Shown here: positions 15,563-40,294 of the stretch, piece by piece
How the letters are laid out: each line of letters starts with the position of its first letter
Numbering within the stretch: the stretch's first letter is position 1
Assembly (NCBI RefSeq): GCF_000006765.1
Contig: NC_002516.2
Length of the DNA stretch: 64,000 bases
Reading direction: 5' to 3' (one strand)
From: Pseudomonas aeruginosa PAO1
Lineage (GTDB): Bacteria > Pseudomonadota > Gammaproteobacteria > Pseudomonadales > Pseudomonadaceae
Translations under genes and position numbers: made by a program
Notes under the pieces: generated by a model
Seen by the model: only the letters and a program-made list of their open reading frames with translations
Told to the model about the DNA's origin: nothing
The model's database searches: none

Positions 15563-15587
15563 GCGCAGGGCCGCTCTCGCTGCTGCC

Positions 15588-15638
15588 CGATAACCGGCGA
15601 TTGGCTGATTGGTGAAAAGGTATTGCCTGGGGTTATCG
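15588..15638. promoter_or_regulatory. Operator-like inverted repeat copy 3 (CGATAACCG-N33-GGGTTATCG)
   Basis: Read directly upstream of the second MFS gene; shares GCCTGGGGTTAT with copy 1. Confidence 0.65.
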
Positions 15639-15747
15639 ATGAATGCGCAGAAGTGATTATCCGCGCGGGAGCGGCCTGGCTACAGTCGGCCCAACGCAAG
15701 CGGCCATGCCGCCTCCGCGTCGAACAACAACAAGAAGGAAGCCCTCC

Positions 15748-17070: not shown

Positions 17071-17100
17071 CCCACACTACGCACCGATAGGAGCTGCGAC

Positions 17101-18276
17101 ATGAAAATCAAATCCGTCCGTACCCGCGTCTTCGAATGGAAGGGCAAGGTCGTCCCGCCGCAGGCGCACTTCTGCACCAATGCCAGCGACATCCTGTTCG
17201 AGAAGGGAGACGCCATGGGTTCGTTCCGCTTCCACGGCTGGCTGGTGGTGGAGATCGAGACCGACGACGGCCTCGTCGGCATCGGCAACTGCGCCCTGGC
17301 GCCGCGCGTGGCGAAGGAAATCGTCGACCTCTACCTGGCGCCGATCTGCATCGGCGAAGACCCGTTCGACAACGAGTACATCTGGCAGAAGATGTATCGC
17401 CGCACCCACGCCTGGGGCCGCAAGGGCATCGGCATGGCAGCCATCTCGGCGGTGGACCTGGCGATCTGGGACATCATGGGCAAGGCGGTGAACAAGCCGG
17501 TGTTCAAGCTGCTCGGCGGCCGCACCAAGGAGAAGATCTGGACCTACGCCTCGAAGCTCTACGCCAACGACAACCTCGACGCCTTCCTCGAAGAGGCCCA
17601 GGGCTACCTGAACCAGGGCTTCACCGCGCTGAAGATGCGCTTCGGCTATGGCCCCAAGGACGGCCCGACGGGCATGCGCAGGAACATCGAGCAGGTCCGC
17701 GCGCTACGCGAACTGGCCGGGCCGGACATCGACATCATGCTCGAATGCTACATGGGCTGGACCCTGGAATACGCCCGGCGGATGCTGCCGAAGCTCGCCG
17801 AGTTCGAACCGCGCTGGCTGGAGGAGCCGGTGATCGCCGATGACATCGAGGGCTACGTCGAGCTGAAGAAGATGGGGATCATGCCGATCTCCGGCGGCGA
17901 GCACGAATTCACCGGCCACGGCTTCAAGGACCTGCTGGAGCGCCGCGCGGTGGACGTCATCCAGTACGACACCAACCGCGTCGGCGGGATCACCGCCGCG
18001 CGCAAGATCAACGCCATGGCCGAGGCCTGGTCAGTGCCGGTGATCCCGCACGCCGGACAGTTGCACAACTATCACCTGACCATGGCCAGCACCGCCTCGC
18101 CGATGGCCGAGTTCTTCCCGGTGTTCGACGTCGAGGTCGGCAACGAGCTGTTCTACTACGTGTTCAAGGGCGAGCCGCAGCCGGTCGACGGCTATATCCA
18201 GCTGGACGACCACAAGCCCGGCCTGGGCCTGGAGATATCCGAAGAGCACCTCAAGGATTTCATCATCATCGAGTGA
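17101..18276 (+). CDS. lyxD: Mandelate racemase/enolase-superfamily dehydratase, L-lyxonate dehydratase
   Basis: [33 protein letters not shown] motifs. Corresponds to PA2215 of the published PAO1 L-lyxonate pathway (from memory). Confidence 0.85.
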
Positions 18277-18303
18277 TAGTCGGAGCCCACAGGAGGAGCC
18301 GAG

Positions 18304-19299
18304 ATGCGGCTGATTCAATTCGAGGACCGGGCAGGGCAGCGCCGGGTCGGCGTCGTCGAAGGCGCCGGGATACAGGTGCTGCGCGGCGTGCGCAGCACGC
18401 GCGAACTGGGGCTGGCGGCGATTCGCGCGGGCAGCGGCCTGCACGACGAGGTGCTGCGCCGAGGCAGCGAGCCAGGCCCGGACTATGCCGGGTTGCTGGA
18501 GGAGGGAAGGGTGCTGCCGCCGCTGGATCATGACGACCCGGCCCATTGCCTGGTCAGCGGCACCGGCCTGACCCACCTGGGCAGCGCCGCGACGCGCGAC
18601 CGCATGCACCAGCAGAACCAGGGCGACGAGACCGCGCTGACCGACACCATGCGCATCTTCAGGTGGGGCCTGGAGGGCGGCAAGCCACCGGCGGGCCAGG
18701 TCGGCGCGCAGCCCGAATGGTTCTACAAGGGCGACGGCGGCATCGTCGTGCGCCCCGGCGCGGACTTCCCGCTACCGGCCTTCGCCGAGGACGCCGGCGA
18801 GGAACCGGAGCTGGTCGGGCTCTACCTGATCGGCGATGACCGCCGGCCTTACCGGCTCGGCTACGCCCTGGGCAACGAGTTCTCCGACCACCTGATGGAG
18901 CGCCGCAACTACCTGTACCTGGCGCATTCCAAGCTACGCGCCTGCTGCTACGGGCCGGAGCTGCGAGTCGGCGAACTGCCGCGCCACCTGCAGGGCGAGA
19001 GCCGGATCCTGCGCGACGGCGAAGTGCTCTGGCAGCAGGCGTTCCTTTCCGGCGAGGACAACATGTGCCACAGCCTGGAGAACCTCGAGTACCACCATTT
19101 CAAGTACGCGCAGTTCCTCCGTCCGGGCGACGTCCACGTGCATTACTTCGGTACCGCCACGCTGTCCTTCGCCGACGGGATCAAGGCTGCTCCGGGGGAT
19201 GTCTTCGAGATCGCCATGGCCGAGTTCGGCGCGCCGCTGCGCAATGGCATCGCCGCCGTCGAGACCGCACTGACGCCGGGGCGGGTGGTAGCGCTCTGA
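18304..19299 (+). CDS. FAH-family (AraD1-like) 2-keto-3-deoxy-L-lyxonate dehydratase
   Basis: GTGLTHLGSA, QPEWFYKG, EEPEL, GNEFSDH, YLAHSKLR motifs. Confidence 0.85.
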   Translation: MRLIQFEDRAGQRRVGVVEGAGIQVLRGVRSTRELGLAAIRAGSGLHDEVLRRGSEPGPDYAGLLEEGRVLPPLDHDDPAHCLVSGTGLTHLGSAATRDRMHQQNQGDETALTDTMRIFRWGLEGGKPPAGQVGAQPEWFYKGDGGIVVRPGADFPLPAFAEDAGEEPELVGLYLIGDDRRPYRLGYALGNEFSDHLMERRNYLYLAHSKLRACCYGPELRVGELPRHLQGESRILRDGEVLWQQAFLSGEDNMCHSLENLEYHHFKYAQFLRPGDVHVHYFGTATLSFADGIKAAPGDVFEIAMAEFGAPLRNGIAAVETALTPGRVVAL

Positions 19300-19427
19300 A
19301 GCCCCACCGCCGTGCATAGGCCGGAGCTCCACGAGAGACCCGCGGCACGGTTTCCTTCATTCCTGCGGAGCCTTGGCTCCAACCCCGCCGGCCATCCCCG
19401 GCGGGGCTTCCCCTGTATGAGGTCGAC

Positions 19428-21011
19428 ATGACAGCCATCCTCGGACACAACTTCATCGGCGGCGCCCGCAGCGCGGCCGGCACGCTCTTCCTGCAAAGCC
19501 TCGACGCCGCCAGCGGTGAGGCGCTGCCGTACCGCTTCGTGCAAGCCACCCCGGAAGAAGTGGACGCCGCCGCCGAAGCCGCCGCCAGCGCCTACCCGCA
19601 CTACCGGCAACTGCCGGCCAGCCGCCGCGCGGAATTCCTCGATACCATCGCCGCCGAACTCGACGCGCTGGACGATGATTTCGTCGCCATCGTCTGCCGT
19701 GAAACCGCGCTACCGGCCACGCGCATCCAGGGCGAACGCAGCCGCACCAGCGGCCAGCTGCGCCTGTTCGCCGAAGTCCTGCGGCGCGGCGACTTCCATG
19801 GCGCGCGCATCGACCGCGCCCGGCCCGAACGCAAGCCGCTGCCACGCGTCGACCTGCGCCAGTGCCGGATCGGCCTCGGCCCGGTGGCGGTGTTCGGCGC
19901 GAGCAACTTCCCCCTGGCGTTCTCCACCGCCGGCGGCGATACCGCCGCGGCCCTGGCCGCCGGCTGCCCGGTGGTGTTCAAGGCGCACAGCGGACACATG
20001 GCCACCGCCGAACGGGTCGCCGCGGCGATCCTCCGCGCGGCCGAGCGCACCGGCATGCCGGCGGGCGTATTCAACATGATCTACGGCGGCGGAGTAGGGG
20101 AGCGGCTGGTACGCCACCCCGCGATCCAGGCGGTCGGCTTCACCGGTTCGCTGAAGGGTGGCCGCGCCCTCTGCGACATGGCGGCCGCCCGGGCGCAGCC
20201 GATCCCGGTGTTCGCCGAGATGAGCAGCATCAACCCGGTGGTGCTGCTGCCGGCGGCGCTGAAGAAGCGCGGCGAGGCCGTGGCCGACGAACTGAGTGCC
20301 TCGGTGGTGCTCGGCTGCGGCCAGTTCTGTACCAATCCCGGGCTGGTCATCGGCATCCGCTCTGCGCAATTCTCGGCGTTCCTCGAACGCTTCGCCGCCC
20401 GCATGGACGACCAGCCGGCGCAGACCATGCTCAACACCGGCACGCTGGCCAGCTATGAAAAAGGCCTGGCGGCGCTGCACGCCCACCCGCGCGTCCGCCA
20501 TCTCGCCGGGCAACCGCAGGAGGGCCGCCAGGCCCGGCCGCAACTGTTCCAGGCGGACGTCAGCCTGCTGCTGGAGGGCGACGAGTTGCTGCAGGAAGAA
20601 GTCTTCGGCCCGGCCAGCGTGGTCGTCGAGGTCGCCGACCACGCCGAACTGAAGCGCGCGCTGCATGGGCTGCACGGGCAGCTCACCGCGACCCTGATCG
20701 CCGAAGCGGAAGACCTGGCGTCCTTCGCCGACCTGGTACCGCTCCTGGAACAGAAGGCAGGACGCCTGCTGCTCAACGGCTACCCGACCGGCGTGGAAGT
20801 CTGCGACGCGATGGTCCACGGCGGCCCGTACCCGGCCACTTCGGACGCCCGCGGCACCTCGGTGGGCACCCTGGCCATCGACCGTTTCCTGCGCCCGGTG
20901 TGCTACCAGAACTACCCGGACGCGTGGCTGCCGGAAGCGCTGAAGGATGGCAACCCATTGGGGATTGCGCGGTTGGTGGACGGGATCGTGACGCGGGCGG
21001 CGGTTGCTTGA
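19428..21011 (+). CDS. Alpha-ketoglutarate semialdehyde dehydrogenase (NADP+)
   Basis: FGASNFPLAFSTAGGDTA, GFTGS, EMSSINP, GQFCTNPG, EEVFGP motifs. Confidence 0.9.
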   Translation: MTAILGHNFIGGARSAAGTLFLQSLDAASGEALPYRFVQATPEEVDAAAEAAASAYPHYRQLPASRRAEFLDTIAAELDALDDDFVAIVCRETALPATRIQGERSRTSGQLRLFAEVLRRGDFHGARIDRARPERKPLPRVDLRQCRIGLGPVAVFGASNFPLAFSTAGGDTAAALAAGCPVVFKAHSGHMATAERVAAAILRAAERTGMPAGVFNMIYGGGVGERLVRHPAIQAVGFTGSLKGGRALCDMAAARAQPIPVFAEMSSINPVVLLPAALKKRGEAVADELSASVVLGCGQFCTNPGLVIGIRSAQFSAFLERFAARMDDQPAQTMLNTGTLASYEKGLAALHAHPRVRHLAGQPQEGRQARPQLFQADVSLLLEGDELLQEEVFGPASVVVEVADHAELKRALHGLHGQLTATLIAEAEDLASFADLVPLLEQKAGRLLLNGYPTGVEVCDAMVHGGPYPATSDARGTSVGTLAIDRFLRPVCYQNYPDAWLPEALKDGNPLGIARLVDGIVTRAAVA

Positions 21012-21149
21012 AAGGGGTGCCAGGGAGGGGCGAGGTCTCGAGCGGAGCGGGACCTCGCTGGCGCGGAAAAAGCCGGAGAGGTGCGCGGCAGGACGCGGGG
21101 GAGCGGGCCGAATCAATCTCCCGGCGCTGTTGCCCTGGCGTGCACGACG

Positions 21150-22253
21150 CTACAGATGCTCGTCGAAGAATCCGGCAATCCGATCGAAAGGAATCCTGTC
21201 CAGCCGGTCGTACAGGTCGACATGACTGGCTCCCGGAACGATCAGCAGCTCCTTTGGCTCTGCGGCAGCGGCGTAGGCGGTCTCGCTGAAGTAGCGTGAA
21301 TGGGCCCTTTCGCCGTGGATTAACAGGATCGGGCGTGGCGAGATCTCCTTGATGTAGGTGAGGATCGGCATGTTCATGAACGACAGCGGCGTGGTCATCG
21401 TCCAGGCGTTACCGGAGTTGACTGCCCGCGGGTGGTAGCCACGGGGTGTCATGTAGTAGTCGTGGTAGTCGACGAGGAACTGTGCCTCACCACCCTTCAG
21501 TTCGTTGTAGGGCGGCTGATAGGCGGGGGTACCGCTTTCCGCGTCCTTCCAGCGCTGCTGGCCCAGTTGTTCCAGCGTTCGCGTGCGCTGTTCGAGGGTC
21601 ACGCTGTCGTTGTAGCCCTTGGACATGACCCGCGTCATGTCGTACATGGTGCTGGTCACCACCGCCTTGACGCGCTTGTCCACGGCCACCGCGTTCAGCG
21701 CCATGCCACCCCAGCCGCAGATGCCGATGACGCCGATGCGCTCGCGATTCACTTCCGGCAACAAACTGATGAAATCCACTGCCGCGCTGAAGTCTTCGGT
21801 ATTGATATCCGGCGAAGCGACGTTGCGTGGCTGACCGCCGCTCTCACCGGTATACGATGGGTCGAACGCCAGCGTGACGAATCCGCGTTCGGCCATGGTT
21901 TGCGCATACAGTCCGGAGGACTGCTCCTTGACCGCGCCGAACGGACCGCCGATCACGATTGCCGGCAGCCGATCGCCGCCACGGTTCTTCGGCAGGTACA
22001 GGTCAGCTGCCAGGGTGATGCCGTAGCGATTGGCGAAGGTGACCTTGCGATGTTCGACCTTTGCGCTCAGGGGAAAGGTCTTGTCCCACTCCTGGGTCAA
22101 TTGCAGCTGCATGTTGGTTCCTCCGGTGTTTGACGAAGTCGTTGCCGCCGGACTGGTCTGGCAGCCGACGAGAGCCATCAGCGCACCGGCAAGGACTGCG
22201 CCCCTCAGGGCACCCTTGCGAGAGCGAGCTCGATTGCTGTGCTTGGTTTCCAT
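21150..22253 (-). CDS. Exported alpha/beta hydrolase (YcjY-like; PA2218-like), probable lipoprotein
   Basis: Lipobox LVGC; GGPFGAVKEQ, FDPSYTGESGG, GICGWGG nucleophile elbow, HVDLYD. Alternative start at 22265. Confidence 0.85.
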   Translation of the reverse strand: METKHSNRARSRKGALRGAVLAGALMALVGCQTSPAATTSSNTGGTNMQLQLTQEWDKTFPLSAKVEHRKVTFANRYGITLAADLYLPKNRGGDRLPAIVIGGPFGAVKEQSSGLYAQTMAERGFVTLAFDPSYTGESGGQPRNVASPDINTEDFSAAVDFISLLPEVNRERIGVIGICGWGGMALNAVAVDKRVKAVVTSTMYDMTRVMSKGYNDSVTLEQRTRTLEQLGQQRWKDAESGTPAYQPPYNELKGGEAQFLVDYHDYYMTPRGYHPRAVNSGNAWTMTTPLSFMNMPILTYIKEISPRPILLIHGERAHSRYFSETAYAAAAEPKELLIVPGASHVDLYDRLDRIPFDRIAGFFDEHL

Positions 22254-22346
22254 GGCGTTCTCCATCGATCAGATCGACGTGGTGGGATTCGGCTCGACGA
22301 CCTGGCCTGCGGCGCGAGGCAAGTCGCGTCCGGGCGTTCCCGGGGT

Positions 22347-23555
22347 CTAGCCGGCCGGGGCTTTCGAGCGTGCGGTGAGGATGGTCAGGAAGGCTGCGAT
22401 CAGCAGCATCGCGGCGCTGGCGAAGAAGGTCGCCTGATAGCCAGTGCGATCGAACAGCAGACCACCCAATGTGGAGCCCAGGGCAATGGAGAGTTGCACC
22501 ACGGCGACGAACAGGCCGCCACCGGCTTCGGCGTCCTCTGGGAACACCCTGGCGATCCAGGCCCACCAACCGACGGGGGCCGAGGTACCGGTCAGTCCCC
22601 ACAATCCGAGCAGGACGACAACGATGGCGGGCCAGCCGCCAAGGACCGTCAGTACCAGGGCGATCAGGGCCATCAGCAACGGGATGGCGACCAGTGTCTG
22701 GAAGAAGCGCCGTTGCAGAACCCGGTCGATCAGCAGGGTGCCGATAAAGCCCGCTGCACCGATCACCAGCAGTACCAGCGAAACATGCGCGCCATGTACG
22801 CCGGTGACCGTCTCCAGGAATGGTCGCACATAGGTGAACAGGGAAAACTGGCCCATGAAGAACAGGCTGCTGGCGAGCATGCCGAGCATCACACCGGGAC
22901 GCTTGAGCAGAGCGAATACCGTGAACACATTGCCCGGGCCGGGAGCACGCGCGCCGGCCCGCATGGAGGGCAGGGTGGTCCATTGCCAGGCCAGTGCCAC
23001 CAGGGCTACCGGCACAAGGCAGAGAAAAGCCCCTCGCCAGCCGATGAGGGTGCCTAGCCAGGCGCCCAGCGGCGCGGCCACCACTGTCGCCAGAGCGTTG
23101 CCGCCATTGACGAGGGCCAGGGCTCGCGGCACGTCGTTGGCAGGCACCAGGCGCATGGCCGTGGCTGCCGACATCGACCAGAAGCCGCCGATCACTATGC
23201 CGATCAGCGCCCGGCCCAGCATGTAGACGAAATAGTTTGGCGCGAGCGCGACGATTGCGCCGGACATGCCCATTGCCGCCGTCAGTCCCAGCAACAGCGT
23301 CTTGCGGTTCAGGCTGCCGGCAACGGATGAAATGAACAGGCTGGTTAAAACGGCGAAGGCGCCGGAGATGGCGATGCCCTGGCCTGCCATGCCCTCGGTA
23401 GTTCCCAGGTCGTTGGCGATGGGAGTCAGCAGGCTGACCGGCAGGAACTCCGACGCGACCAGTGCGAAGGCGCAAACCGCAATGGCCAGGACGCCACTCC
23501 AGGAGCCCGATTGTTCAGGGTTTTCGTTGGCGGTATCGAGTGCGCGGGTTGTCAT
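22347..23555 (-). CDS. opdE: MFS transporter (DHA1/NepI-like), OpdE
   Basis: SEFLPVSLLTPIA and GGFWSMSAATAMRLVP motifs; position matches PA2219. Confidence 0.85.
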   Translation of the reverse strand: MTTRALDTANENPEQSGSWSGVLAIAVCAFALVASEFLPVSLLTPIANDLGTTEGMAGQGIAISGAFAVLTSLFISSVAGSLNRKTLLLGLTAAMGMSGAIVALAPNYFVYMLGRALIGIVIGGFWSMSAATAMRLVPANDVPRALALVNGGNALATVVAAPLGAWLGTLIGWRGAFLCLVPVALVALAWQWTTLPSMRAGARAPGPGNVFTVFALLKRPGVMLGMLASSLFFMGQFSLFTYVRPFLETVTGVHGAHVSLVLLVIGAAGFIGTLLIDRVLQRRFFQTLVAIPLLMALIALVLTVLGGWPAIVVVLLGLWGLTGTSAPVGWWAWIARVFPEDAEAGGGLFVAVVQLSIALGSTLGGLLFDRTGYQATFFASAAMLLIAAFLTILTARSKAPAG

Positions 23556-23770
23556 GAAAAAACCGGCTTATCCAAAGAGTGAAAAGAAGAGATCAGCTCC
23601 GCTGGTGACAAACGCCTGGGCTGAGTCGGCAGGGAAGGGAAGTCAGGGTGCGGTAGGCGGAGATGATTGTTGCAAATGAATATTCGGGTATGCGGCGGCC
23701 TGTTACTAGCTAAACAATTCTTAATGGGTATATAAGCTCTACTAATTAATGGTCCGTGGAAGAATTGGCC

Positions 23771-24691
23771 ATGATCAAACGTAACCTCAACGACCTCCTG
23801 TCCTTCGTTGCCGTCGCCCGCGAGGGCACCTTCACCCGTGCCGCCGCCCAACTGGGCGTGACGCAGTCGGCATTGAGCCAGTCGATAAGCGGCCTGGAGG
23901 CGCGCCTGCAGATCCGCTTACTCACCCGCACCACCCGCAGCGTTTCGCCCACGGCGGCAGGGGAGCGCCTGTTGAATGCCATCGGCAATCGCTTCGACGA
24001 GATCGAGGCGGAACTGGACGAGCTGTCGGCGCTGCGCGACAAACCAAGTGGCACGGTTCGCATTACCTGTGGCGATCACATCCAGCGAACCCTGTTGCTA
24101 CCCAGGCTCACCCCGTTGCTGCTGGAATATCCAGACATCAAGGTGGAGTTCGACATCAACTATGGCTTTCGGGACATCGTGGCCGACCGGTTCGATGCCG
24201 GCGTACGCCTGGGCGACACCATAGACAAGGACATGATCGCCGTGCCGATTGGGCCGCCAGTGCGCATGGCGGTCGTCGCGGCCCCGGCCTACTTTGCGGC
24301 ACATCCGAAGCCCAGGAGTCCTCGCGATCTGGTCGACCACAACTGCATCAACATGCGCATGCAGTCCGGCGGCGGCCTGTATGCCTGGGATTTTCAGCGG
24401 AAAGATCGACACGTGAACGTCCGTGTCGATGGACAGCTCATTTTCAACACCTCGCCGAATATCGTGGATGCCGCGCTGGCGGGGCTGGGAATCGCCTGGC
24501 TCCCCGAAGAGGAATTCGCTCCGCATATCGAGGAGGGCCGGTTGCTGCGAGTGCTGGAAAACTGGTGCCCACTGTTCCCTGGCTACTACCTGTACTACCC
24601 GAACCGTCGGCAACCATCGCCGGCTTTCAGCCTGGTCGTGGATGCGCTGCGTTACACCAGGCCCAGGGGAACGACCATAGGCGGCGGGTAG
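23771..24691 (+). CDS. LysR-type regulator (CrgA/PtxR-like), divergent from opdE
   Basis: FTRAAAQLGVTQSALSQ, LLTRTTRSVSPT, FDAGVRLG motifs. Start 23771 (alternative 23756). Confidence 0.92.
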   Translation: MIKRNLNDLLSFVAVAREGTFTRAAAQLGVTQSALSQSISGLEARLQIRLLTRTTRSVSPTAAGERLLNAIGNRFDEIEAELDELSALRDKPSGTVRITCGDHIQRTLLLPRLTPLLLEYPDIKVEFDINYGFRDIVADRFDAGVRLGDTIDKDMIAVPIGPPVRMAVVAAPAYFAAHPKPRSPRDLVDHNCINMRMQSGGGLYAWDFQRKDRHVNVRVDGQLIFNTSPNIVDAALAGLGIAWLPEEEFAPHIEEGRLLRVLENWCPLFPGYYLYYPNRRQPSPAFSLVVDALRYTRPRGTTIGGG

Positions 24692-25067
24692 CGGGCATGC
24701 AGGGACTCGGTCGCCGGCCACTCATCACGGGGTGGACGATCTGTGAAAACGGCGACAATCGCCAGAGATGCGACGTTTGACCATCCAGCCTCAGGCACCT
24801 GCTGTTTTTCGGACACAGGTTCAGGCCAGCTCACAGACACGCGACGCATACGCATGGTGGGAAGAAATGTTCGAGGGCGAGGACCTCCTGGCCAACCTGG
24901 GCCGGAGGTTGTCGTCGGAGCGCGAGAACGAAACATCCTTGCGAGCGATGTCGAGGAACCCGGCGACAACGGCGCCGGGTTATTAACTATCAGTGTCGGG
25001 CAAGAGGGCGAGATTCGAGCCGAAAGCTCAATCGCAAAGGATGTGAGTTCCACCTAGGTCATATTTA

Positions 25068-25095
25068 ATTTAACATAATATACATTATGCGAATC
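25068..25095 (-). other. dif: Chromosomal dif site (XerCD recombination site)
   Basis: Minus strand reads GATTCGCATAA-TGTATA-TTATGTTAAAT. XerD arm and spacer are identical to E. coli dif (GGTGCGCATAA TGTATA TTATGTTAAAT); XerC arm differs at 2 positions. Confidence 0.95.
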
Positions 25096-25100
25096 CATGG

Positions 25101-26400
25101 TGTTACGGCCAAATAGTAATGGCGTCTAGGGTTTCCCTCCTGCATCACAGGAGGCACGCCATGACTGCGGCAACTTGCGGATGGGTCACCATGAGCATGC
25201 GGGAGCTGGATCGCCTCAAGGTCATCGAGGCAATCATCGAGGGTCGGTTGAAACCTGCCGCTGCGGCGCAGCGTCTGCGCCTGACGACACGTCAGGTGCA
25301 CCGGCTGGTTCTGCGTTATCGCGAGGACGGCCCAGCCGGCCTAACATCTCGTCGACGTGGTCAGCCGAGTAACCGGCAGTTGTCGCCAGGTCTGGAGAAT
25401 CCCGCCATTAGCTTGATTCGACGGAACTATAGCGACTTTGGTCCAACTCTGGCCCAGGAAAAACTGGTCGAGTGCCACGGCCTTAAGCTGGCCAAAGAAA
25501 CGGTACGACGGATCATGGTTGATGCCGGCATGTGGGTACCGCGCAAGCAACGGCCGCCCAAGGTCTATCAGCCACGCAACCGGCGCGCCTGTTGCGGCGA
25601 ACTGATCCAGATCGATGATGGAAAGCCGCTGGCCTTCTACAGCGACAAAGCCAGCGTGTTCCGCAGTAACCACAAGGCGCCTCAGGGCGGCGACGGCTAT
25701 ACCCAGTTCGGCCGAGCGATGTACGAGTTGAACATCGAGAGCTGCGCCAACAGCAGCCAGGCCAAAGGTCGTGTGGAGCGTGCGAACCTCACTCTGCAGG
25801 ATCGCCTGGTCAAGGAGCTGCGGCTTCGCGGAATCAGCAACATGGCCGACGCCAATGCCTTTGCAGCCCACTTTATGGCCAGCTACAACGCGCGTTTTGC
25901 CAAGCCGCCGCGCTCTGAGCATGACTGCCATCGCCCGCTGCACAGTGATGAAGATTTGGAGCTGATCTTCGCCTGGCGAGAAGCGCGGCGGGTTTCGCAG
26001 CGGTTGACCGTGCAGTACGACAAGGTGCTGTATCTGCTAGCGGACACTCCGCAGTCCCGTCGCCTGGCGGGTGATCACGTCGATGATCTACCACTACCCG
26101 AATGGCCGCATCGAGCCCAGGGTGGACGGCACCGCCCTCCCCTTTACCACCTACGACAAACTCTGCGAGATAGACCAGGGTGCCATCGTCGAGAACAAGC
26201 GCTTGGGTCATGTGCTGCAAGTCGCCCAGCTCGTCCAAGCGCAGCGCGACAATCGGCGCTCGCAATCGGTACCGGGAAATCCGCGGCAGTCAACGCAAGG
26301 CAAGATGCTGTCGAAGAAGGCGCAGCGAGAACTGATGCCGGAAGATATCGCCGCTGCCCTGGATAACACGCCACCATCGAGGCGAAGTCGCCATGCGTGA
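25101..26400 (+). mobile_element. Degenerate IS1202-family (formerly ISNCY) insertion sequence abutting dif
   Basis: Starts TGTTACGGCCAAATAGTAATG 5 bp after the XerC arm and carries a transposase pseudogene. No right IR was found by eye. Confidence 0.75.
25161..26400 (+). pseudogene. IS1202/ISNCY DDE transposase pseudogene
   Basis: MSMRELDRLKVI, GELIQID, YSDK, ANSSQAKGRVER, QYDK motifs. IQIDD is joined directly to GKPLAFYSDK (internal deletion near 25618). A frameshift near 26075 continues as YHYPNGRIE...DQGAIVENKRL. Confidence 0.85.
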
Positions 26401-26631
26401 GTCAGCGCCGAGGCACTGAAGATACTAGTGGTTGCCGGAGCTGCGCGGGACTTACGTGCTATTCCTGCGCCTTCCGGCCACGGTTGGCAGCTCCAAGTGC
26501 GCTACAGTCCCGACGGTCAATATTACCCGCTACGTTCTCGACGTGAACTTGTGCGCATATTTGGATCACTGGACTCGCTTAATCGGTACGCAAATCGTTT
26601 GGGCATCCACACGTATAGCGTGGAGTTATAA
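26401..26631 (+). pseudogene. Small plasmid/transposon-type protein, probably 5'-truncated
   Basis: Frame VSAEALKILVVAGAARDLRAI...WQLQVRY...LRSRRELVRIFGSLDSL..YANRLGI..YSVEL resembles ~80-aa mobile-element proteins. No ATG at its apparent N-terminus. Confidence 0.4.
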
Positions 26632-26885
26632 CTGTGACACGAATTTCCCCATGTGGGGAGTCGACAGGTTTCTAGAAAAATAGTTCGATAAGTGTAGCGA
26701 CTTTCGTTTGCAAACCGCTACAAATAGCGCTGCGGGCCAACCAGCTGAGCTTTTCCAACACCTGACAGTGTGGAATAACGCTTCTCCGAGTTCCGGAATT
26801 AAGGGCGATGGTATCCACATATTATTTAGCGGGCGTGATAATTTTTTATCTGGCCCTCTTTATCGAAGGAGAGGGCCAGATAACA

Positions 26886-27542
26886 CTAGATCGCTGCAAA
26901 ATAGGCCAGCAGCAAGGTTACTGCGGTCGTATAGCGGAGACCCGATTTGATCGTATTGAATACGTCGCTGAAGTTGGGAGCGTCCAGACGTAAACCAACA
27001 CCAGGTCCGACTAACGCTTTGATATCCTCAGGGAGCGTCATTGCCTGCCAAGTACCAGGAGTCAGTGTCCTCAGATTCACACCGTAGGAAACCAGTAGTC
27101 CGGATTCCTGCGAAATGCCTCCGGATGCATCCGTAGAGAAACCAACGTCGGTTGGATAGACGTTCGGACTGCCCTTGAAGCGGTCAAGATATCCACTGCC
27201 GAAACGGGCTTTTATTCGATCAAGATTCTGCGCCATGGAGGTGAGCAAAGGAAGTATCTCAACGTTGCAAACACGTTCCTTTTCATTAACCATCCTGAAA
27301 CCAATGGTTACGCCGTTGGCTATTTCCTGGGCAAGCAACGTCGAGTATTGCTGGTCCGCTTTGCTGATGTCTCCGCCCGGAATGAATTCCGGGTGTAGCC
27401 TCAGCGGAATGTCCCATGCCTCTATAGTCTGTGCTTCGGGGAAGACAAAGCCAGGATTGCATTGACGGGCAAAACCCTTATAGATATTAGCCAGGGATTG
27501 ACCAGGATTCTGGTAGATATTGATCTCGGCCATCGTCGCCAC
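26886..27542 (-). CDS. Hypothetical protein with hydrophobic C-terminal tail (PA2222-like)
   Basis: 218-aa ORF starting 2 bp after the muramidase stop, with AGAGG SD. No recognisable motif. Confidence 0.75.
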   Translation of the reverse strand: MATMAEINIYQNPGQSLANIYKGFARQCNPGFVFPEAQTIEAWDIPLRLHPEFIPGGDISKADQQYSTLLAQEIANGVTIGFRMVNEKERVCNVEILPLLTSMAQNLDRIKARFGSGYLDRFKGSPNVYPTDVGFSTDASGGISQESGLLVSYGVNLRTLTPGTWQAMTLPEDIKALVGPGVGLRLDAPNFSDVFNTIKSGLRYTTAVTLLLAYFAAI

Positions 27543-27544
27543 CT

Positions 27545-28564
27545 CTAGAGTCCCAGGGATCGTTGGAGATAGTCCGCGCGATTGTTCAATCGCCTGGCTA
27601 TGCCATCGCTCGGATCGGTACTGTTGGGAGTACCATTCCAGTTCCTCAACTCCCTAATGGCGGCTAGCCAGTCGCTCTGGGAAATAGCAGTCTCAAAGTT
27701 TGGGAACGAGGAATACTCACCATAGTGGTAATACAGGTCTGTCACTATGGTTTTGACCGCCGGAGGTAAGGTGCTCCACTGCTGGAACTTCACCTTCATC
27801 CGATCAGTGACCTTGATCATCTTGGCGGTAAAGAGGGACAGCCCGTCTTCATCTGTGAGTACCGGGATGAGTTGGGCTAATGCCTGGAAGGTCGCGGTGT
27901 TCGCTCCTTTCAAGCCGAGGGCGGGGCGAATTTTTTTGCGCGTGGATTCAGCAATGTTCAGAGCCTGAATGCCGGATTCATCGTGCTGGCCGACATCGAA
28001 GCCATAGCCAATCGTTACACCTGATTCACCGTTGGGGTCAGAGGTCGGAATAGTAGCTCTGTTGCCTCGCCCACCAGGTGGAAGCTCATGACGGGCGGTG
28101 AAATCGATATTAATACCCATTTCAATCAGATAGGAAATATTGGACTGGAGGCGGCTGACCTTATCGGCTTTGTCACCATCGATGCGGTCTTGGATAAAGG
28201 TATTGATCTGCTGGTTCAATTGCACCTGGAGGTCGCTCACCGAAATACTGTTGGCTCCTCCGGTTTCGGCGACCGTACGAATAGTGACCTCATGAACCTT
28301 GAAGTAGTCGTCGAAGACTAGAACGGGCCGCCCGGCAGTCTGGCTTATGACCTGCGTCAGTTGCCCCGTCAACCCACCTTGTGCTGAGTAGCTGGGGGAT
28401 GACAGCCAGTCGGTATAGAGGTCAGGAATTCCGTGAGTAATTCGGATAGGCTCTGGTTCCGCTGCGAGCAGAACACGCTGTGCCTCCTCTCGTTCTGGAT
28501 TTTCTAGGTAATTGTATAGCCGCTCCAGATTGCGCTGAAGGGTCTGATCCAATTCTCTATTCAC
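27545..28564 (-). CDS. Pesticin C-terminal (T4-lysozyme-like muramidase) domain protein (PA2223-like)
   Basis: IDFTARHE...IP...SGVTIGYGFDVGQ and LP...T...LYYHYG...FPNF.....W...IRELRNW...RR..RADYL match the pesticin muramidase pattern. No signal peptide. Confidence 0.8.
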   Translation of the reverse strand: MNRELDQTLQRNLERLYNYLENPEREEAQRVLLAAEPEPIRITHGIPDLYTDWLSSPSYSAQGGLTGQLTQVISQTAGRPVLVFDDYFKVHEVTIRTVAETGGANSISVSDLQVQLNQQINTFIQDRIDGDKADKVSRLQSNISYLIEMGINIDFTARHELPPGGRGNRATIPTSDPNGESGVTIGYGFDVGQHDESGIQALNIAESTRKKIRPALGLKGANTATFQALAQLIPVLTDEDGLSLFTAKMIKVTDRMKVKFQQWSTLPPAVKTIVTDLYYHYGEYSSFPNFETAISQSDWLAAIRELRNWNGTPNSTDPSDGIARRLNNRADYLQRSLGL

Positions 28565-28596
28565 CTTAGTCTCCTCTGCTTAGTGAAGCCAATTTG

Positions 28597-29340
28597 TTAT
28601 TTCATTGACTGTTCGCACTCGCTTTCTAGACGATTGAACTCAGTAGAATACTTATCATATTCATTTTGCATTTTTTCCGGCAAATACTCTCGCTTCAGGT
28701 CTCTGAAGAAGCTGCCCTTCTCTAGTATCTTCTTGCATTGGTGATTTTTGGCAGACAAGGAGAGATGTGCCGTATGAAAAACACGAGAGAGATAACCAAA
28801 ACCTTCAAACATATCCCTACACTCTGTTATCAGTTTTCGAGAAATCCAGTAGGCCTTCTCTGTCTCGTTATTCTTCAGTGCTTTCTTCACTTGCTTGTCG
28901 TTGAATCTTATAGAGGCGGGCTCGCAGATTGGGGAAGGCTTCCAATACGTACCAGTAAAACCTGCTGCCGCCCCGCAGAAGCCCTGACAGTCCCTGCTTG
29001 CGGCTCCTTTCTCTATGGTAATTCTGTCATCATTCAGTTTGAAAACGACATCGCACGACATATCGCCGATGCCACGGACGTCGACCTGCACATGACCTGA
29101 CTCTATAGTTCCATTCAATCCGCAAGCATGTGCATTGTGTCCAGTGCTTCGTATCCGAAACTTTTGAAGTCCTTCGAATAACGGAGATATCGTCAGCAGC
29201 CCACTATTTCCAGTCCTATAGTAATCCCCAGGAGGGAAGTAGCTCTTTGGTTCTTCAGCGACACAAAGAGTGATATTGTAGTAAAGGGTGAGTATGGCAA
29301 AAATGCTAATGCTTTTGAGCTTCATGTTTATGCCCTGCAT
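28597..29340 (-). CDS. Secreted Cys-containing protein, candidate muramidase inhibitor/immunity (PA2224-like)
   Basis: Sec signal (MKLKSISIFAILTLYYNITLCVA; likely start 29325); HACGLNG...SCDVVF...DCQGFCGAAAGFTGTY pattern. Confidence 0.65.
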   Translation of the reverse strand: MQGINMKLKSISIFAILTLYYNITLCVAEEPKSYFPPGDYYRTGNSGLLTISPLFEGLQKFRIRSTGHNAHACGLNGTIESGHVQVDVRGIGDMSCDVVFKLNDDRITIEKGAASRDCQGFCGAAAGFTGTYWKPSPICEPASIRFNDKQVKKALKNNETEKAYWISRKLITECRDMFEGFGYLSRVFHTAHLSLSAKNHQCKKILEKGSFFRDLKREYLPEKMQNEYDKYSTEFNRLESECEQSMK

Positions 29341-29572
29341 GAAAGCAGCTAGGTGGGGCGCTGGGTGATCCCATATAGGATGGTTTTTTGCTGGTCAGAT
29401 CGACTGATCTATAAGTTCCGTCGAGCAGGCTAGTCCGCCCAAAAAACACAAGCAGACTTGTAAGAGTCATTCTGTTTTACCAGCACTTCATGTTCAACAT
29501 CACTAAAGTTTAGACGTCATTGAGCATGAGCTGGAAAAAGTTGCGGCAACGACCCTAGACGCTGAACGCTGC

Positions 29573-29989
29573 TCACCTGAGGCGTTCCACTTCCTTGCGA
29601 AACATCACTCTCTGCTTGAAGCTGAAACCTCCGCCACCATCCAGCAGCGCCGGCGGAGCAACCGGTAGATCGGGCTCGCGGCAGGTGGCTATCACGCGCT
29701 TGGCGAAGACTTCATCGAGCGTACTGCGGCTCTTATCATTCCCCGCGCCGTACTGTACCCGGCAACTGCTTATGCGCCCCGACGAGCTTGCGAAGCGGAA
29801 AAACACCATAACATCGGCCTCGGGGATCTCATCTCCCGGTGCGAACAGCGGGTAACGAAGCCTCTTGGCGAATTCCTGGCGGAATTCCTGGATAAAAATG
29901 GCCTCTTGCTCTGCTCGCTCCTGCAAAGTGACTGAATGGGAGCAGCCGCCGATCAGACTCAGCAATACCAATAGGCAAACTATCCTCAA
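29573..29989 (-). CDS. Lipoprotein with TonB C-terminal-like domain (PA2225-like)
   Basis: TTG start and lipobox IGGC; RLRYP...V.V.F....SGRISSCRV...LDE......PP pattern. Confidence 0.6.
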   Translation of the reverse strand: MRIVCLLVLLSLIGGCSHSVTLQERAEQEAIFIQEFRQEFAKRLRYPLFAPGDEIPEADVMVFFRFASSSGRISSCRVQYGAGNDKSRSTLDEVFAKRVIATCREPDLPVAPPALLDGGGGFSFKQRVMFRKEVERLR

Positions 29990-30032
29990 CGCTCTTCCTC
30001 CTTGAAAAAGAGGCAGTCTTTTATTTTAGTAT

Positions 30033-30533
30033 CTAAAAATGACTCTTGACGTCTAAGCCAAGAACTGCAAGAGCTTCCAGCGCCAGGTTTTGACCTTCTG
30101 CAATACCCGAATTATGTGCAAACTCGACAAGTCGCTCGATTACTCTGACGCCACCCTGATCTGGCTCGACAAATTCCGATATATTATCCATAGCAACAGA
30201 TGCGTCCCACGCAGCCTGACTAAGCAGCTCTTTATACAATGCATCAGCGCTAGATATATTACGAATATTTGCGAGATTAAGCCTGATTCGATCCAAGGCT
30301 TCGTGCGCGATCTGAAGTAGCAAATATGGAAATGGATTCTTTTGAGTTCGACGCTTCCTGCATGAGTCGCTAATTAGTCCAGCAAGCATTGCTGATCCTT
30401 CGGCCTCAATGCGAAGGGAATCATCAGCAATCGAGATTGTCCGCGCCTTCGCAATATAGCCCAAAACGTAAGCATCGAACTGAGTCTCGGCAATCATAGA
30501 CAGAATCTGATTATTACGATTATTGAAATTCAT
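30033..30533 (-). CDS. qsrO: Quorum-sensing repressor QsrO
   Basis: ATG at 30533 with AAGGAG SD gives 166 aa. Lies directly downstream of vqsM as in PAO1; symbol assigned by synteny. Confidence 0.75.
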   Translation of the reverse strand: MNFNNRNNQILSMIAETQFDAYVLGYIAKARTISIADDSLRIEAEGSAMLAGLISDSCRKRRTQKNPFPYLLLQIAHEALDRIRLNLANIRNISSADALYKELLSQAAWDASVAMDNISEFVEPDQGGVRVIERLVEFAHNSGIAEGQNLALEALAVLGLDVKSHF

Positions 30534-30567
30534 AAGATGCTCCTTGCCCAATCTCAAACTAGATAGA

Positions 30568-31545
30568 TCAGTGGAAACTGTTTCTGAATTCTGTAGTAGA
30601 CTGCCCGGTCCAACGTCTGAATGCATGTCTAAAACTCGCTGTTTCCGAGTACCCCAGAATATCGCTAATACGATCAACTGGTATCGATGAATTCAGTAGC
30701 AGTGCAATTGCTCGTTCTTTGCGGGCCTTATCTACAATCTGGCGATAAGTGCAGCCCTCGTCCGCCAAGCGACGTCTTACCGTCCGCTCATTCATGCGTA
30801 AATACTTTGCGGTAGTCACCAAGCTAGGGTATTGATCTGGTATGGAATCAAGGAATAACTCGATTCGCTGACGGAGCCCTCCCATCTCTACTTCCAACAG
30901 AGCATTGAAACTCTCACCTGCCATAGTCAGGGCCGACTGAAATACCGCCGGATTGGCAGTCGCCAGTGTTCTATTCAACTGATGAGCTGGAAAGCTAAAT
31001 ATTATGTCATTTCCTTCATGCTTCACAGGCAAAGAAAAGAAACCTTCATATATTGTTTTATCTGCGCCGTGCACAGGCACTGTCAATGCAGAGATGGGAA
31101 AGTCATTACCTAACAGATCCATAATGAGCTTGTAGGTTGCAGAGGCTATAACATTTACATGAAACTGACGGGATGCGTCATTCCACTCTGGCTTAAAGTT
31201 AACTGAAATATGGATTTCTACTTCGTAATTCTCCCTAGGCTTGACGCCAACATTAGCTATATCACGATTGAACAACTTGACATAGGCCCTGATGACTTTC
31301 AAAATATCACCTACGTTCTCGGCGCATAGCAACGCCAATCCTATCACGCCATAATCAGATATATGGTAATAAGTTCCAAGATTCAGTCCTTCTTTTCCTG
31401 AATACCCCTTGCTGACTATCCAGTTGTAAAGTGCGTCACTTCTTGACTCTTGTTCTGCCGCAAAGGGTGGTATTGCGATATCACGATCACGAAGATAGTT
31501 CTGCAGAGGGCGCCATTCAAAATCAAATATGTGTTCGGTCACCAT
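30568..31545 (-). CDS. vqsM: AraC-family regulator VqsM
   Basis: N-terminal ligand domain plus C-terminal double HTH (MNERTVRRRLADEG, ILGYSETASFRHAFRRWTGQS). 325 aa; alternative GTG start at 31557. Confidence 0.88.
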   Translation of the reverse strand: MVTEHIFDFEWRPLQNYLRDRDIAIPPFAAEQESRSDALYNWIVSKGYSGKEGLNLGTYYHISDYGVIGLALLCAENVGDILKVIRAYVKLFNRDIANVGVKPRENYEVEIHISVNFKPEWNDASRQFHVNVIASATYKLIMDLLGNDFPISALTVPVHGADKTIYEGFFSLPVKHEGNDIIFSFPAHQLNRTLATANPAVFQSALTMAGESFNALLEVEMGGLRQRIELFLDSIPDQYPSLVTTAKYLRMNERTVRRRLADEGCTYRQIVDKARKERAIALLLNSSIPVDRISDILGYSETASFRHAFRRWTGQSTTEFRNSFH

Positions 31546-31553
31546 GTCTATAT

Positions 31554-32765
31554 TCACCTCACCCCTACTGTTCTTGATATAGCCCTGAACGCTGCAAGTG
31601 CCTCATGCTCCATACGGATGCCGTCAACGTTGTAGTCGACATACGCGGAGGTCTTTGCAATCACCACACGCCTAAGTGGATTTACATAAATAAACTGCCC
31701 GTACACTCCGATAGCCAAGAACTCCCCTTCTTTGCCTTCTGGAATCCACCACTGGTAACCATACCCAAGATTTGGCTCACCATCCTCTATGTAACGTCCA
31801 GGACGCAAGTGAGCACTCCGAGGTTTGGTTGATGCCTTGACCCACTCAGCACTTACAATTTGACTTCCAGTCAGGCTGCGACCGCCATGAAGAAATAATA
31901 GACCAATGCGTGCAAAGTCTCTTAGGCAAAGGTTCACCCCACCGAATGCTAGCTCTGTGCCCCGATCGTCTGTTAACCAAGCACCTTCACATTCGGCACC
32001 CAGTTGGGGCCAAAGTCTTTGATTCATAAACTGTGAGGGGCCCATACCAGTCGCGCCCAATAAGACCATACCAAGCACCTGGGTATCTACGCTAACGTAG
32101 TGGTGCACTCTCCCCGGGGCATCTTCTCTTCTCAATGAACTCACTTTTTCATTTACTGATCCGCCAAGCGCTATAGTCCTACCTAGCTGGTTGATATCGG
32201 AGTCCGAATTCCCGTAGTCCTCACTGAAAGCTATTCCTGATGACATCTCAAGCACATCTCTCAAAGAAACACCCGCATATCCGCCAGCAGAAAGCTGTGG
32301 GGCGTACAGGTTCACAGGATCTAGCAGACTGTGTATTGATCCTTCATCAACTGCCATTCCAATCAAGAGGGACATTAGTGATTTGCTTAGCGACCAGCCA
32401 ATAGCAAGGCTTTTCGCACTATTGCCCAGGTAGTATTCCTCAAAGGCAATGCGATCGTCACTGAGAACTATAAGGCCGGTGGTATTGCTGCTCGCCAACC
32501 AGTCTTTAAAGCCAATCTCGTGACCTTGAAAGCTAAATGAGCCAGGCATATCCCTGAGGTTTTTTTCAAAAAAATGAGCCGCTCCGCTCTTCTTTATTGG
32601 GACCGAGTTAAACAGTCTCGGCATTGCTCGAAAATTTTCAGCAATTTTCCCCGAGTCAAACAAAGTGTAAAAATTCCACACTCTCACACCTGCACTACCA
32701 ATGCAGGCGATGCTAAAAAAGATGAGAATCATTGAGAGGAAAATAGCATTTCTCTTATTTATCAT
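31554..32765 (-). CDS. Serine hydrolase, beta-lactamase class C-like/NylB family, exported (PA2228-like)
   Basis: SxxK (WSLSKS), YxS (HYVS), YGYQWW and GVYGQ motifs; N-terminal hydrophobic helix. Confidence 0.88.
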   Translation of the reverse strand: MINKRNAIFLSMILIFFSIACIGSAGVRVWNFYTLFDSGKIAENFRAMPRLFNSVPIKKSGAAHFFEKNLRDMPGSFSFQGHEIGFKDWLASSNTTGLIVLSDDRIAFEEYYLGNSAKSLAIGWSLSKSLMSLLIGMAVDEGSIHSLLDPVNLYAPQLSAGGYAGVSLRDVLEMSSGIAFSEDYGNSDSDINQLGRTIALGGSVNEKVSSLRREDAPGRVHHYVSVDTQVLGMVLLGATGMGPSQFMNQRLWPQLGAECEGAWLTDDRGTELAFGGVNLCLRDFARIGLLFLHGGRSLTGSQIVSAEWVKASTKPRSAHLRPGRYIEDGEPNLGYGYQWWIPEGKEGEFLAIGVYGQFIYVNPLRRVVIAKTSAYVDYNVDGIRMEHEALAAFRAISRTVGVR

Positions 32766-33706
32766 TCTTGTCGATCTCTCAGTTTGTGCTAGCTCGTCTC
32801 GACCCAGCTAACAGCCAGTGACTATCCGGTAGTGGAGCAAGGTTAAGTCCTTAAGGACTTTTCTCTTAAAGGTGAAGATCAAGGCATTTCACCATCTACT
32901 GATATTTAATTTTAACTCGCTTAACACTACTCCGCACGCATGCCATGCACTACTATTATCTGAGTCGCGAAGGTATCCGCCTCCCTTGGACTATGCTTTC
33001 AATTTAGCAACACGAAACACTGCAGCATGATCGATATCGCCCTTGGATGAATCGGCAGACTCATCAATAGGCGCCCGCAATAAACAAGACCCAACATCAC
33101 CGCATATCCCGGAGGATCAGCAACAGGATAGATTCAGTCTTTTTCATTATTTCCATCCGCCGCCTCATGCGTACTACTAGCCCGAAAGCTGATAAAACCA
33201 GCATGAAGCATCTTTTTGCTAGAGTATCTTCGGACAAATGCCGGATATTTTCGGACACCCTCTTCGGCAGGTCCTTAGCGGCACCATGTCTTATCTGCGC
33301 TTTTATTTCATTAAACACCCCATAGAGAGTACTAATGACTTGTCGTCCAGATTGTAACTATCGTAGATGAGTCGACTAGAGGTATTCGCTACAATTTATA
33401 GATTCGAAAATTCATTTCATGCTTGGAGATATCGATTTAACACTTATCTTGTGTTACTTCTGCGCTAGGTTCCGTACGCAAAGTAATGTCGTAAGCACCG
33501 TAGCGTGCAAGCCAGCGTGACCATTACGCCAAGATTCTTGACGAGCTTCAGAATCCCACGGCCAGCTCAGCTAGGTCCTGGGGACTCCCCGCCCACCGAG
33601 GTTATCGACGCATCCGGAGGGTCTGGCGGCTTGACAGCGGGCGAAGGCTTGGCGGACTCTATATTGTATTTAGTCGATACCATCTCGCATCTTAGAGAAC
33701 CCTCCC

Positions 33707-34426: not shown

Positions 34427-34543
34427 GGAAGCGCCGACGCCCCCCGCAGGCAGGGAATCGGCCTGGGGATGCATGGAGTGCCGGAAAGCGGGTATAAAGC
34501 GCCAGCGTTAAGCGACCCAGACGTCTGCCAAAGGACCCCTTTC

Positions 34544-35140: not shown

Positions 35141-35449
35141 AGCCGTCCGCGCACGCCGCGGGCCCGAACCTCTTCCGCCTTCGACGAGGGCAAACGTCCG
35201 CCAAGCCCCCCAGGTCGGACCGGCACGCTCGAACGGCCAACCTGCGTCATGGAACCGCAGGCGCATCCTGCCCAGCCAGCCCGCAGCGCCAGTGGACAGG
35301 CGGGTCGTCGAACCGGCGGCTGGCCACCTGGCCGAGCGGCCTGCCCTCACCTTTCGCCCCGCTTCGCTTCCCAGGCCAGAGCGCTCGCGGATTGGCGGCG
35401 TCAGATTTCCTCGTCTACTGTTTGGATAAAAGTTTGGCGCCAGAAATAC

Positions 35450-35463: not shown

Positions 35464-35503
35464 TAAAAAAACTTACCCAGACTACGGATATTTCCCTGGG
35501 AAT

Positions 35504-40280: not shown

Positions 40281-40294
40281 GGAGCGACATCGCC

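Follow-up and report, generated by a model that had tools for sequence, protein, structure and literature searches.

The locus and the 28-bp site

The 64,000-nucleotide stretch of the Pseudomonas aeruginosa PAO1 chromosome analysed here (the window) contains the chromosome dimer-resolution site dif at positions 25068-25095, in the intergenic spacer between PA2220 and PA2221 and within the known plasticity region RGP23. Judged from the sequence, this segment is very probably the single chromosomal dif of PAO1, at which FtsK-activated XerC and XerD would act, and also the pivot of RGP23 and a site used by integrative mobile elements exploiting Xer recombination (IMEX). The dif of PAO1 was already known from literature of 2009 and 2018, and so was RGP23. 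The parts of the site are as follows.

25068..25095, - strand: chromosomal dif, 28 bp, canonical reading GATTCGCATAA TGTATA TTATGTTAAAT, the same as the published PAO1 dif
25068..25078, - strand: XerD-binding arm, ATTTAACATAA on the + strand, facing PA2220 (assignment from homology with the dif layout of E. coli and proteobacteria)
25079..25084, - strand: central 6-bp region, TATACA on the + strand (read from the sequence)
25085..25095, - strand: XerC-binding arm, TTATGCGAATC on the + strand, facing PA2221 (the arm on whose side foreign elements join)

The + strand reads ATTTAACATAATATACATTATGCGAATC, i.e. ATTTAACATAA/TATACA/TTATGCGAATC, and its reverse complement, GATTCGCATAATGTATATTATGTTAAAT, is letter for letter the PAO1 dif of Carnoy & Roten 2009 (PMC2731167); the conventional XerC-to-XerD order of dif is found on the - strand. 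Two partially palindromic arms of 11 bp enclose a centre of 6 bp, and the whole matches the proteobacterial consensus. The same genes stand in the same order in the PAO1-type chromosome CP047067.1 (2,427,438-2,449,021), with dif at about 2,443,078, and the window therefore corresponds to about 2.42-2.48 Mb of PAO1.

The 64-kb window contains one match to dif at up to 3 mismatches, while 100 dinucleotide-preserving shuffles contain none, and no second dif-like site was found on either strand of the window at up to 9 mismatches. A match with 10 mismatches at 33647 was considered as a second dif or a mark of an IMEX and rejected as chance: it is inverted and lies in core DNA common to a strain locus (L076) of the comparison below. 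Genome-wide searches in the literature also report one dif in PAO1 (Carnoy & Roten 2009, PMC2731167; Bhowmik et al. 2018), and each of the 18 comparative loci described below has one. The exact 28-mer was found once per retrieved stretch in 45 other species representatives, mostly Pseudomonas, with further cases in Halomonas, Xenorhabdus, Proteus, Neisseria and Thiobacillus metagenome-assembled genomes. The P. aeruginosa representative is not among these matches, its stretch perhaps being masked, and the loci retrieved are 8-kb pieces lying off-centre from dif, which makes them of little use for comparing flanks.

KOPS polarity around dif

Copies of the FtsK-orienting polar sequence (KOPS, GGGNAGGG) point at dif from both sides of the window.

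10511..23639, + strand: KOPS left of dif, pointing at it, with starts at 10511, 13685, 14062, 14067, 18329, 18504, 22968 and 23632
16826, - strand: contrary KOPS copy left of dif (motif search)
26135..63876, - strand: KOPS right of dif, pointing at it, 12 copies, with starts from 26135 to 63869
49961, + strand: contrary KOPS copy right of dif (motif search)

Left of dif, 8 copies are on the + strand and 1 on the - strand; right of dif, the numbers are 1 and 12 (Fisher p = 2.4e-4 for the switch of strand over the 64-kb window). The interval in which polarity switches, 23632-26135, brackets dif within 2.5 kb. The same convergence is known for the whole chromosome of PAO1-UW, with KOPS counts of 153/34 and 271/57 on its two arms, dif at 2.4 Mbp and the skew switch at most 15 kb away (Bhowmik et al. 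2018). Segregation of PAO1-UW terminates at dif according to the same study, but replication does not, ending about 0.7 Mb from dif because of an rrn inversion.

The first-pass annotation, made from the letters of the window, had named a canonical 28-bp dif at 25068-25095. This assignment is confirmed by identity with the published site, uniqueness in the window and convergence of the KOPS, and a better dif at the skew switch was found neither in the window nor, according to the literature, elsewhere in the genome.

RGP23 in PAO1

In PAO1, RGP23 extends from about 21,012 to 33,554, and dif splits it into a left part of 4.0 kb and a right part of 8.5 kb. The features between and including the core anchors are listed below.

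19428..21011, + strand: PA2217, aldehyde dehydrogenase, left core anchor (from the genes and the strain comparison)
21012..25067, no strand: left accessory module of RGP23, GC content 0.623, PA2218-PA2220
21150-22265, - strand: PA2218, alpha/beta hydrolase
22347-23555, - strand: PA2219, MFS transporter
23756-24691, + strand: PA2220, LysR regulator
24990..25036, no strand: block of about 47 nt left of dif, with diverged copies at the same distance from dif (tentative)
25037..25067, no strand: spacer of 31 nt directly left of dif, hypervariable among strains
25096..33554, no strand: right accessory module of RGP23, PA2221 plus the low-GC islet PA2222-PA2228
25119-26366, + strand: PA2221, ISNCY-family transposase open reading frame (ORF)
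26600-33554: low-GC islet PA2222-PA2228, GC content 0.479
33707..34426, + strand: PA2229, MOSC-domain protein, right core anchor

Beyond PA2229 follow PA2230, pslA (35598-37103) and further genes. The GC content is 0.68 in the core on both sides, 0.623 at 21012-25067, 0.601 in the insertion sequence (IS) part and 0.479 at 26600-33554, where a sharp step at about 33,500 closes the low-GC segment. By strain comparison, the right core boundary is 33555 and the left one lies just past PA2217, and the block between PA2217 and the PA2229/psl side varies from strain to strain. The atypical DNA that the first-pass annotation had described around dif is thus borne out on both sides, with a trio of accessory genes (hydrolase, transporter and regulator) on the left and an AT-rich islet on the right. 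A tRNA and tmRNA scan of the whole window found none, so that there is no tRNA-type integration target in it, and an Rfam scan of 24500-25300 found no RNA family.

In the literature, RGP23 of strain PA34 is flanked by PA2217 and PA2235 and measures 125 kb, that of PA7 measures 33 kb and contains integrases and cupD genes, and that of PA14 contains transposon DNA as well as part of the island PAGI-1, with an inversion breakpoint in one isolate. The dif inside the region goes unmentioned in this literature on PA34, PA7 and PA14.

Variation of the flanks among strains

Loci of other strains (given as L numbers where they must be told apart) were obtained by exact-protein look-ups with six anchors, namely PA2217, a prophage replication protein, the common PA2229 allele, a KfrA-like island protein, a GajB-like protein and a KAP NTPase. 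The 18 dif-bearing loci each have exactly one dif, in the orientation of the window and with at most 2 differences. These concern the outermost base of the XerD arm (A or G), the outer XerC arm (GAATC, GAAGC or GAATG) and the centre, which is TATATA in place of TATACA in two loci, both from prophage-bearing strains. The flanking DNA differs right up to dif on both sides, and at least six different right-hand and at least six left-hand neighbours adjoin the same 28 bp. Among the sequences compared, nothing but dif stays constant from core anchor PA2217 to core anchor PA2229. The flank alignment that the first-pass annotation had proposed therefore gives the same single dif in 18 loci with differing DNA on either side.

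The right-hand neighbours fall into six types. The first is the PAO1 flank, CATGGTGTTACGG, and the second an allelic flank, AAGAGTGTTAAGG, with a 34-bp partial duplication. The third is a module of 2.8 kb (Lactamase_B / Gly-zipper / SDR) leading directly into PA2229 in two DK2-type loci, L076 and L084 (= CP003149.1), in which the right module of PAO1 is replaced and identity to the window resumes at 33555. The fourth is an element with two tyrosine recombinases (L078), and the fifth and sixth are the ends of two families of filamentous prophages.

Left of the XerD arm, a 30-nt spacer exists in at least six forms, and the genes upstream of it differ too: they are PA2220, a set of genes for a 180-aa protein, PucR, PhyH, BNR and MMPL, or a GajA/GajB-like pair. 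The genome of L065, which shares only 95.6% identity with the window and probably belongs to the PA7 clade, lacks PA2218-PA2220, and an island follows directly after PA2217.

Three observations were made beside this comparison. In L078 (11294-16900), two adjacent tyrosine recombinases and a protein of about 760 aa adjoin an XerC arm ending in GAATG, and an element with two tyrosine recombinases also lies beyond a prophage array in L055 (2800-8600). In L050 (15671-15730), L061 and L077, the allelic flank corresponding to window 25096-25121 contains the 34-bp partial tandem duplication, with copies GCCAAATAGTAATG... and GCCAAATAGAAATG..., and the XerC arm ends in GAAGC, as in the phages; this duplicated flank may be a scar of past phage integration and excision. 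A contig of 7.0 Mb (L052, JAQAQO010000001.1) begins inside dif, its locus ending ...ATTTAACATAATAT, and this break or start of the assembly may reflect repeated units there.

Filamentous prophages on the XerC-arm side

In one locus (L051), identity to the window covers all three parts of dif and stops after the XerC arm. The genes beyond encode a Zot-like protein, DUF2523, CoaB, an RstB-like protein, a G2P-type replication protein and a repressor, and none of the prophage genes at dif matches Phage_integrase. In other complete genomes, tandem arrays of two to four units of 6.9-7.5 kb each were found. All units are bounded by CTAACGTAA(C/T)-N9-10-(A/T/G)CA-TTATGCGAAGC, in which a degenerate XerD-like half-site comes first and a perfect XerC arm follows at longer spacing. 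The distal end of the array, beside PA2221, reads ...CGTCTGCACA-TTATGCGAATC-catggtgttac. This far junction retains the PAO1 arm and flank, TTATGCGAATCcatggtgttac: phage DNA is joined within the central region to the chromosomal XerC arm, and identity to the window begins at 25082. Thus, in other strains, elements without an integrase lie precisely at dif between one full dif and one hybrid site.

The matching phage attachment site (attP) is present at every unit boundary of the arrays and, contiguously, within the deposited genome of phage WX_Y (OQ354711.1). A 12-bp repeat, ACATTATGCGAA, identical to window 25082-25093, bounds prophage 36-2 of Evseev et al. 2023. That study places the integration sites in intergenic DNA and considers that host integrases are perhaps used; dif is unmentioned in its text. 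Compared with the records of its groups 4-7 and of phage WX_Y, the prophages at dif show 81-93% identity at a coverage of at most 37%, and several further prophage types must therefore exist. Among contigs with one common PA2229 allele, 24 of 29 have a phage-type junction beside PA2221, so that use of dif is common.

These IMEX-type junctions provide indirect evidence for Xer recombination at dif, and they suggest that dif serves as the bacterial attachment site (attB) of integrase-less Pf-like phages. We did not find this stated in the literature searched, and it is an expected extension of the known paradigm.

Smaller elements were observed inside one prophage array (L060, 4900-8200). Two units of 1.6 kb stand in tandem, each with ORFs of 78 and 114 aa, a gene for an RHH_1 protein and a separate attP-type site, GCTCAACATAA-N9-TTATGCGAAGC. 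Their make-up suggests satellite IMEXs of the kind of RS1 or TLC.

PAGI-1 and the XerD-arm side

In L054, the target of the primer for PAGI-1 orf42 listed in PMC3360775 is a GajA-like OLD/ATPase gene. Next to it is a GajB-like helicase gene, and in all configurations with this neighbour (10 of 10) its end lies about 220 bp to the left of dif, so that the low-GC right end of PAGI-1-type islands would adjoin dif on the XerD side. That PAGI-1-type islands end beside dif is suggested by these sequences; it was not found stated in the literature searched and would also extend the paradigm in an expected way. According to a 2025 review, PAGI-1 replaces about 7 kb, and the column for its insertion site contains "-"; the same review, on the work of Liang et al., describes PAGI-1 as fixed via recombination-driven replacement. 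In at least two orf42-positive configurations, L054 and L077, PA2221-PA2228 are still present right of dif, and the replacement of PA2218-PA2222 (6.7 kb) by PAGI-1 is therefore not general.

Three unrelated left flanks contain diverged copies of the block at 24990-25036, each equally far from dif, although a blastn-short search gave no significant link among them. An island with an integrase and the KfrA-like protein has a left end (GTAGGACGAACTG...) that is joined to seven different flanks, in two contexts exactly at the end of the block (25036/25037). These observations on block, spacer and island come from loci L058, L069 and L075-L084. At its right end, the island continues into Fer2/MoCoBD/TetR genes in two genomes, in which neither dif nor the block was found within 5-7 kb of that end. 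That the island simply inserted itself 30 bp left of dif is consequently doubtful, dif and block being absent from the 5-7 kb past its right end. Inverted or direct repeats shared by the left end of the island and the dif-adjacent DNA were sought, and none was found.

A tentative and rather unlikely reading of these data is that RGP23 grows through two site-specific systems on either side of one essential site, Xer on the one hand and block-targeting islands on the other. The block would then be the att core, i.e. the crossover point, for PAGI-1-type integrase/KfrA islands, and its position about 30 bp from dif would reflect a preference of these islands for DNA beside dif. Inversions with a breakpoint in the block may likewise start from it, and the ISNCY gene and AT-rich islet of PAO1 may be the fossil of an Xer-exploiting integration on the XerC side.

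PA2221 and the low-GC islet

In PAO1, the PA2221 ORF is uninterrupted and encodes 415 aa, but the NCBIfam ISNCY model matches it in two pieces. In L050 and L061, an extra 153 bp lies between the positions that correspond to window 25617 and 25618, the gene there being broken into frames of 147 and 340 aa. Terminal inverted repeats were sought for the ISNCY element and for the islet, and none was found. The "IS relic" of the first-pass annotation is thus partly right: the match in two pieces, the 153 bp missing from PAO1 and the lack of terminal repeats agree with a relic, whereas the reading frame is intact.

The islet PA2222-PA2228 includes genes for a DUF3218 protein (PA2222), a pesticin-like lysozyme homologue (PA2223), qsrO (PA2226), the AraC-family regulator vqsM (PA2227) and a protein with a beta-lactamase fold (PA2228); names such as qsrO and vqsM follow Kohler et al. 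2014. PA2223 (window 26886-28564) has a pesticin-type lysozyme domain at its C-terminus (Pfam E = 3e-16), and its neighbour PA2222 matches DUF3218 over the full length (E = 9e-152). From these domains, the two may form a bacteriocin-like toxin/immunity pair. In L063 and L064 (about 1650-3290), an IS of the DDE_Tnp_1 type lies inside PA2222, with an 8-bp target duplication equal to window 26995-27002. Just downstream of PA2222, on the - strand, window 26846-26883 holds an inverted repeat with perfect 14-nt arms around a 10-nt loop, which is probably the terminator of the vqsM-PA2222 operon.

Outside RGP23, an ORF recorded at 34508-35350 on the - strand is antisense to PA2230 and has no Pfam domain. 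Its 90%-identity cluster is labelled "LysR family transcriptional regulator" (303 aa), which is probably an oddity of clustering or annotation.

Proposed mechanism and alternative explanations

In the mechanism we propose, FtsK would be guided to dif by KOPS converging from both arms and would activate XerC and XerD at the septum, which would then resolve chromosome dimers at dif. For this resolution, the natural integration junctions within the site and the published segregation data give indirect evidence. Variation on the XerC-arm side would come largely from IMEX, namely integrase-less filamentous phages of 7 kb and small satellites. Their attP, in which the XerC arm is perfect and the XerD-like half-site degenerate, would recombine with dif, restoring a full dif beside the left flank and leaving a hybrid site at the far end. 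Since the full dif is regenerated beside the left flank, elements would stack rightwards as arrays. Other modules would be swapped by homologous replacement, by their own integrases, or by Tn3 or IS activity; these would include the ISNCY gene with the AT-rich islet in PAO1, the Lactamase_B module of DK2-type strains and, on the XerD side, PAGI-1-type islands. The site would be kept in all configurations, presumably since its loss is selected against. We infer the dependence on Xer and FtsK, the selection for retention of dif and the origin of the non-phage modules.

The first-pass annotation had regarded the locus as a plasticity hotspot organised around dif. The hotspot is real, and the organising mechanism is backed only for the phage arrays of the XerC side. 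Its further proposal, that dif must be kept or brought along by any replacing island, agrees with every dif-bearing configuration, all with one dif in the same orientation, and selection would account for it.

Several points weigh against this reading. The window has its cumulative G-C maximum 14 kb left of dif, at about 10,800, and a second local maximum at 28,500, so that dif lies near the GC-skew switch but not exactly on it. The skew inflection foreseen in the first-pass annotation therefore exists, but away from dif. The offset equals that known for PAO1, in which dif (2,443,082) and the cumulative GC-skew maximum (2,428,120) are 14,962 bp apart (Carnoy & Roten 2009, PMC2731167). The genome-wide uniqueness of the site is taken from the literature, our own search having covered the window, and xerC, xerD and ftsK are all outside the window. 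PAO1 itself has no IMEX, its site being an empty attB. The non-phage modules have no relic Xer site at their far ends, and thus no mark of a placement by Xer. Finally, the integrase/KfrA island of the left side has its own recombinase, and in some genomes no dif lies within 5-7 kb of its right end.

A possible but not probable explanation is that the site is dif but does not cause the variability, being a passenger kept by selection in a permissive zone at the terminus. Gene dosage would be low there and homologous replacement between PA2217 and PA2229 frequent, with Tn3-family transposons, IS elements and islands with their own integrases as the agents. The missing relic sites of the non-phage modules are consistent with this, and Tn3 transposases, IS66, IS21, DDE_Tnp_1 and tyrosine integrases are plentiful in the variable DNA. 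The IS insertions with 8-bp duplication in PA2222, the defined end of the integrase/KfrA island on seven different flanks and the review account of PAGI-1 as a recombination-driven replacement point the same way. However, the right breakpoints of six independent neighbour types fall on the final base of the XerC arm, the prophage arrays show textbook IMEX junctions, and the variation on the left reaches the XerD arm; a permissive zone alone would not place breakpoints at the edges of a 28-bp site.

It is doubtful that the right module of PAO1 (25096-33554) is itself a fossil IMEX placed at dif by Xer and not displaced further since PAO1 gained nothing newer. Like the phages, the module adjoins the XerC arm exactly, and prophages of other strains sit between dif and the module, which is the order of age expected from repeated integration. 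Its composition is foreign (GC 0.48), and Kohler et al. 2014 assign the vqsM operon to a transposable element. Yet no dif-like or XerC-arm relic is found at 33555, the best candidate being an unconvincing CCATTACGCCAA at 33521 with 3 of 12 mismatches, and the match at 33647 is, as said, inverted and in core DNA. Moreover, the module is widespread and stable among strains, and the alternative module of DK2-type strains in the same slot likewise has no relic site.

That the 28-mer is a pseudo-dif or attL imported by a mobile element, with the working dif elsewhere, is extremely improbable: accessory DNA on either side and the distance to the skew maximum would speak for it, but KOPS polarity switches within the bracketing 2.5 kb, the match to the gamma-proteobacterial consensus is the best possible, genome searches in the literature name the same site, every strain examined has one such site at the locus whatever the flanking modules, and chromosome segregation of PAO1 terminates there (Bhowmik et al. 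2018).

Comparison with known systems

The PAO1 dif shares with dif of E. coli K-12 and the proteobacterial consensus the 11-6-11 layout and the convergence of GGGNAGGG. Compared with the E. coli site, 2 of the 28 positions are changed, and both belong to the outer XerC arm. No Tus/Ter fork trap is known from P. aeruginosa. The dif of PAO1 is embedded in strain-variable, not in conserved, DNA.

The IMEX paradigm comprises CTX-phi, RS1 and TLC-phi at dif1 of V. cholerae, as well as dif-integrating phages of Xanthomonas, Yersinia and E. coli O18:K1. As in these systems, the elements at the P. aeruginosa dif are integrase-less filamentous phages with tandem arrays and small satellites, a full dif is regenerated and a hybrid left, and the XerC arm of attP is good while its XerD arm is poor. 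Unlike IMEX of the CTX-phi type, the half-sites of the P. aeruginosa attP are spaced by 9-10 nt instead of 6-7, no toxin cargo was seen in the prophage gene lists, and the PAO1 window shows the empty site. Groups 4-7 of Evseev et al. 2023 (36-2, 17897, 97-1) and WX_Y are partially similar to the dif prophages.

The region agrees with the published RGP23/PAGI-1 locus (a Mathee-type region of genomic plasticity, with the island of Liang et al. 2001) in its left anchor, PA2217, in the psl side as its right anchor and in the kind of strain-specific cargo, and orf42 stands beside dif. The gonococcal genetic island of Neisseria is likewise a large non-phage island beside dif (PMC2731167). It is flanked by dif and a degenerate difB, whereas the search of the window found no such second site for the PAO1 modules.

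Implications

These results place the dif of PAO1 precisely within RGP23 and suggest that its 28 bp are the invariant pivot of the region, which we did not find stated in the literature searched and which is an expected extension of the known paradigm. Such a pivot would explain why PAGI-1 has neither a tRNA nor another recognised insertion site. For locating dif, GC skew is off by 14 kb, while KOPS polarity is accurate to 2.5 kb. Genome assemblies may break at the locus. As an attachment site, dif would open the lysogeny of integrase-less Pf-like phages to xerC/xerD genetics, and it would predict the order in which the members of a prophage array were acquired.

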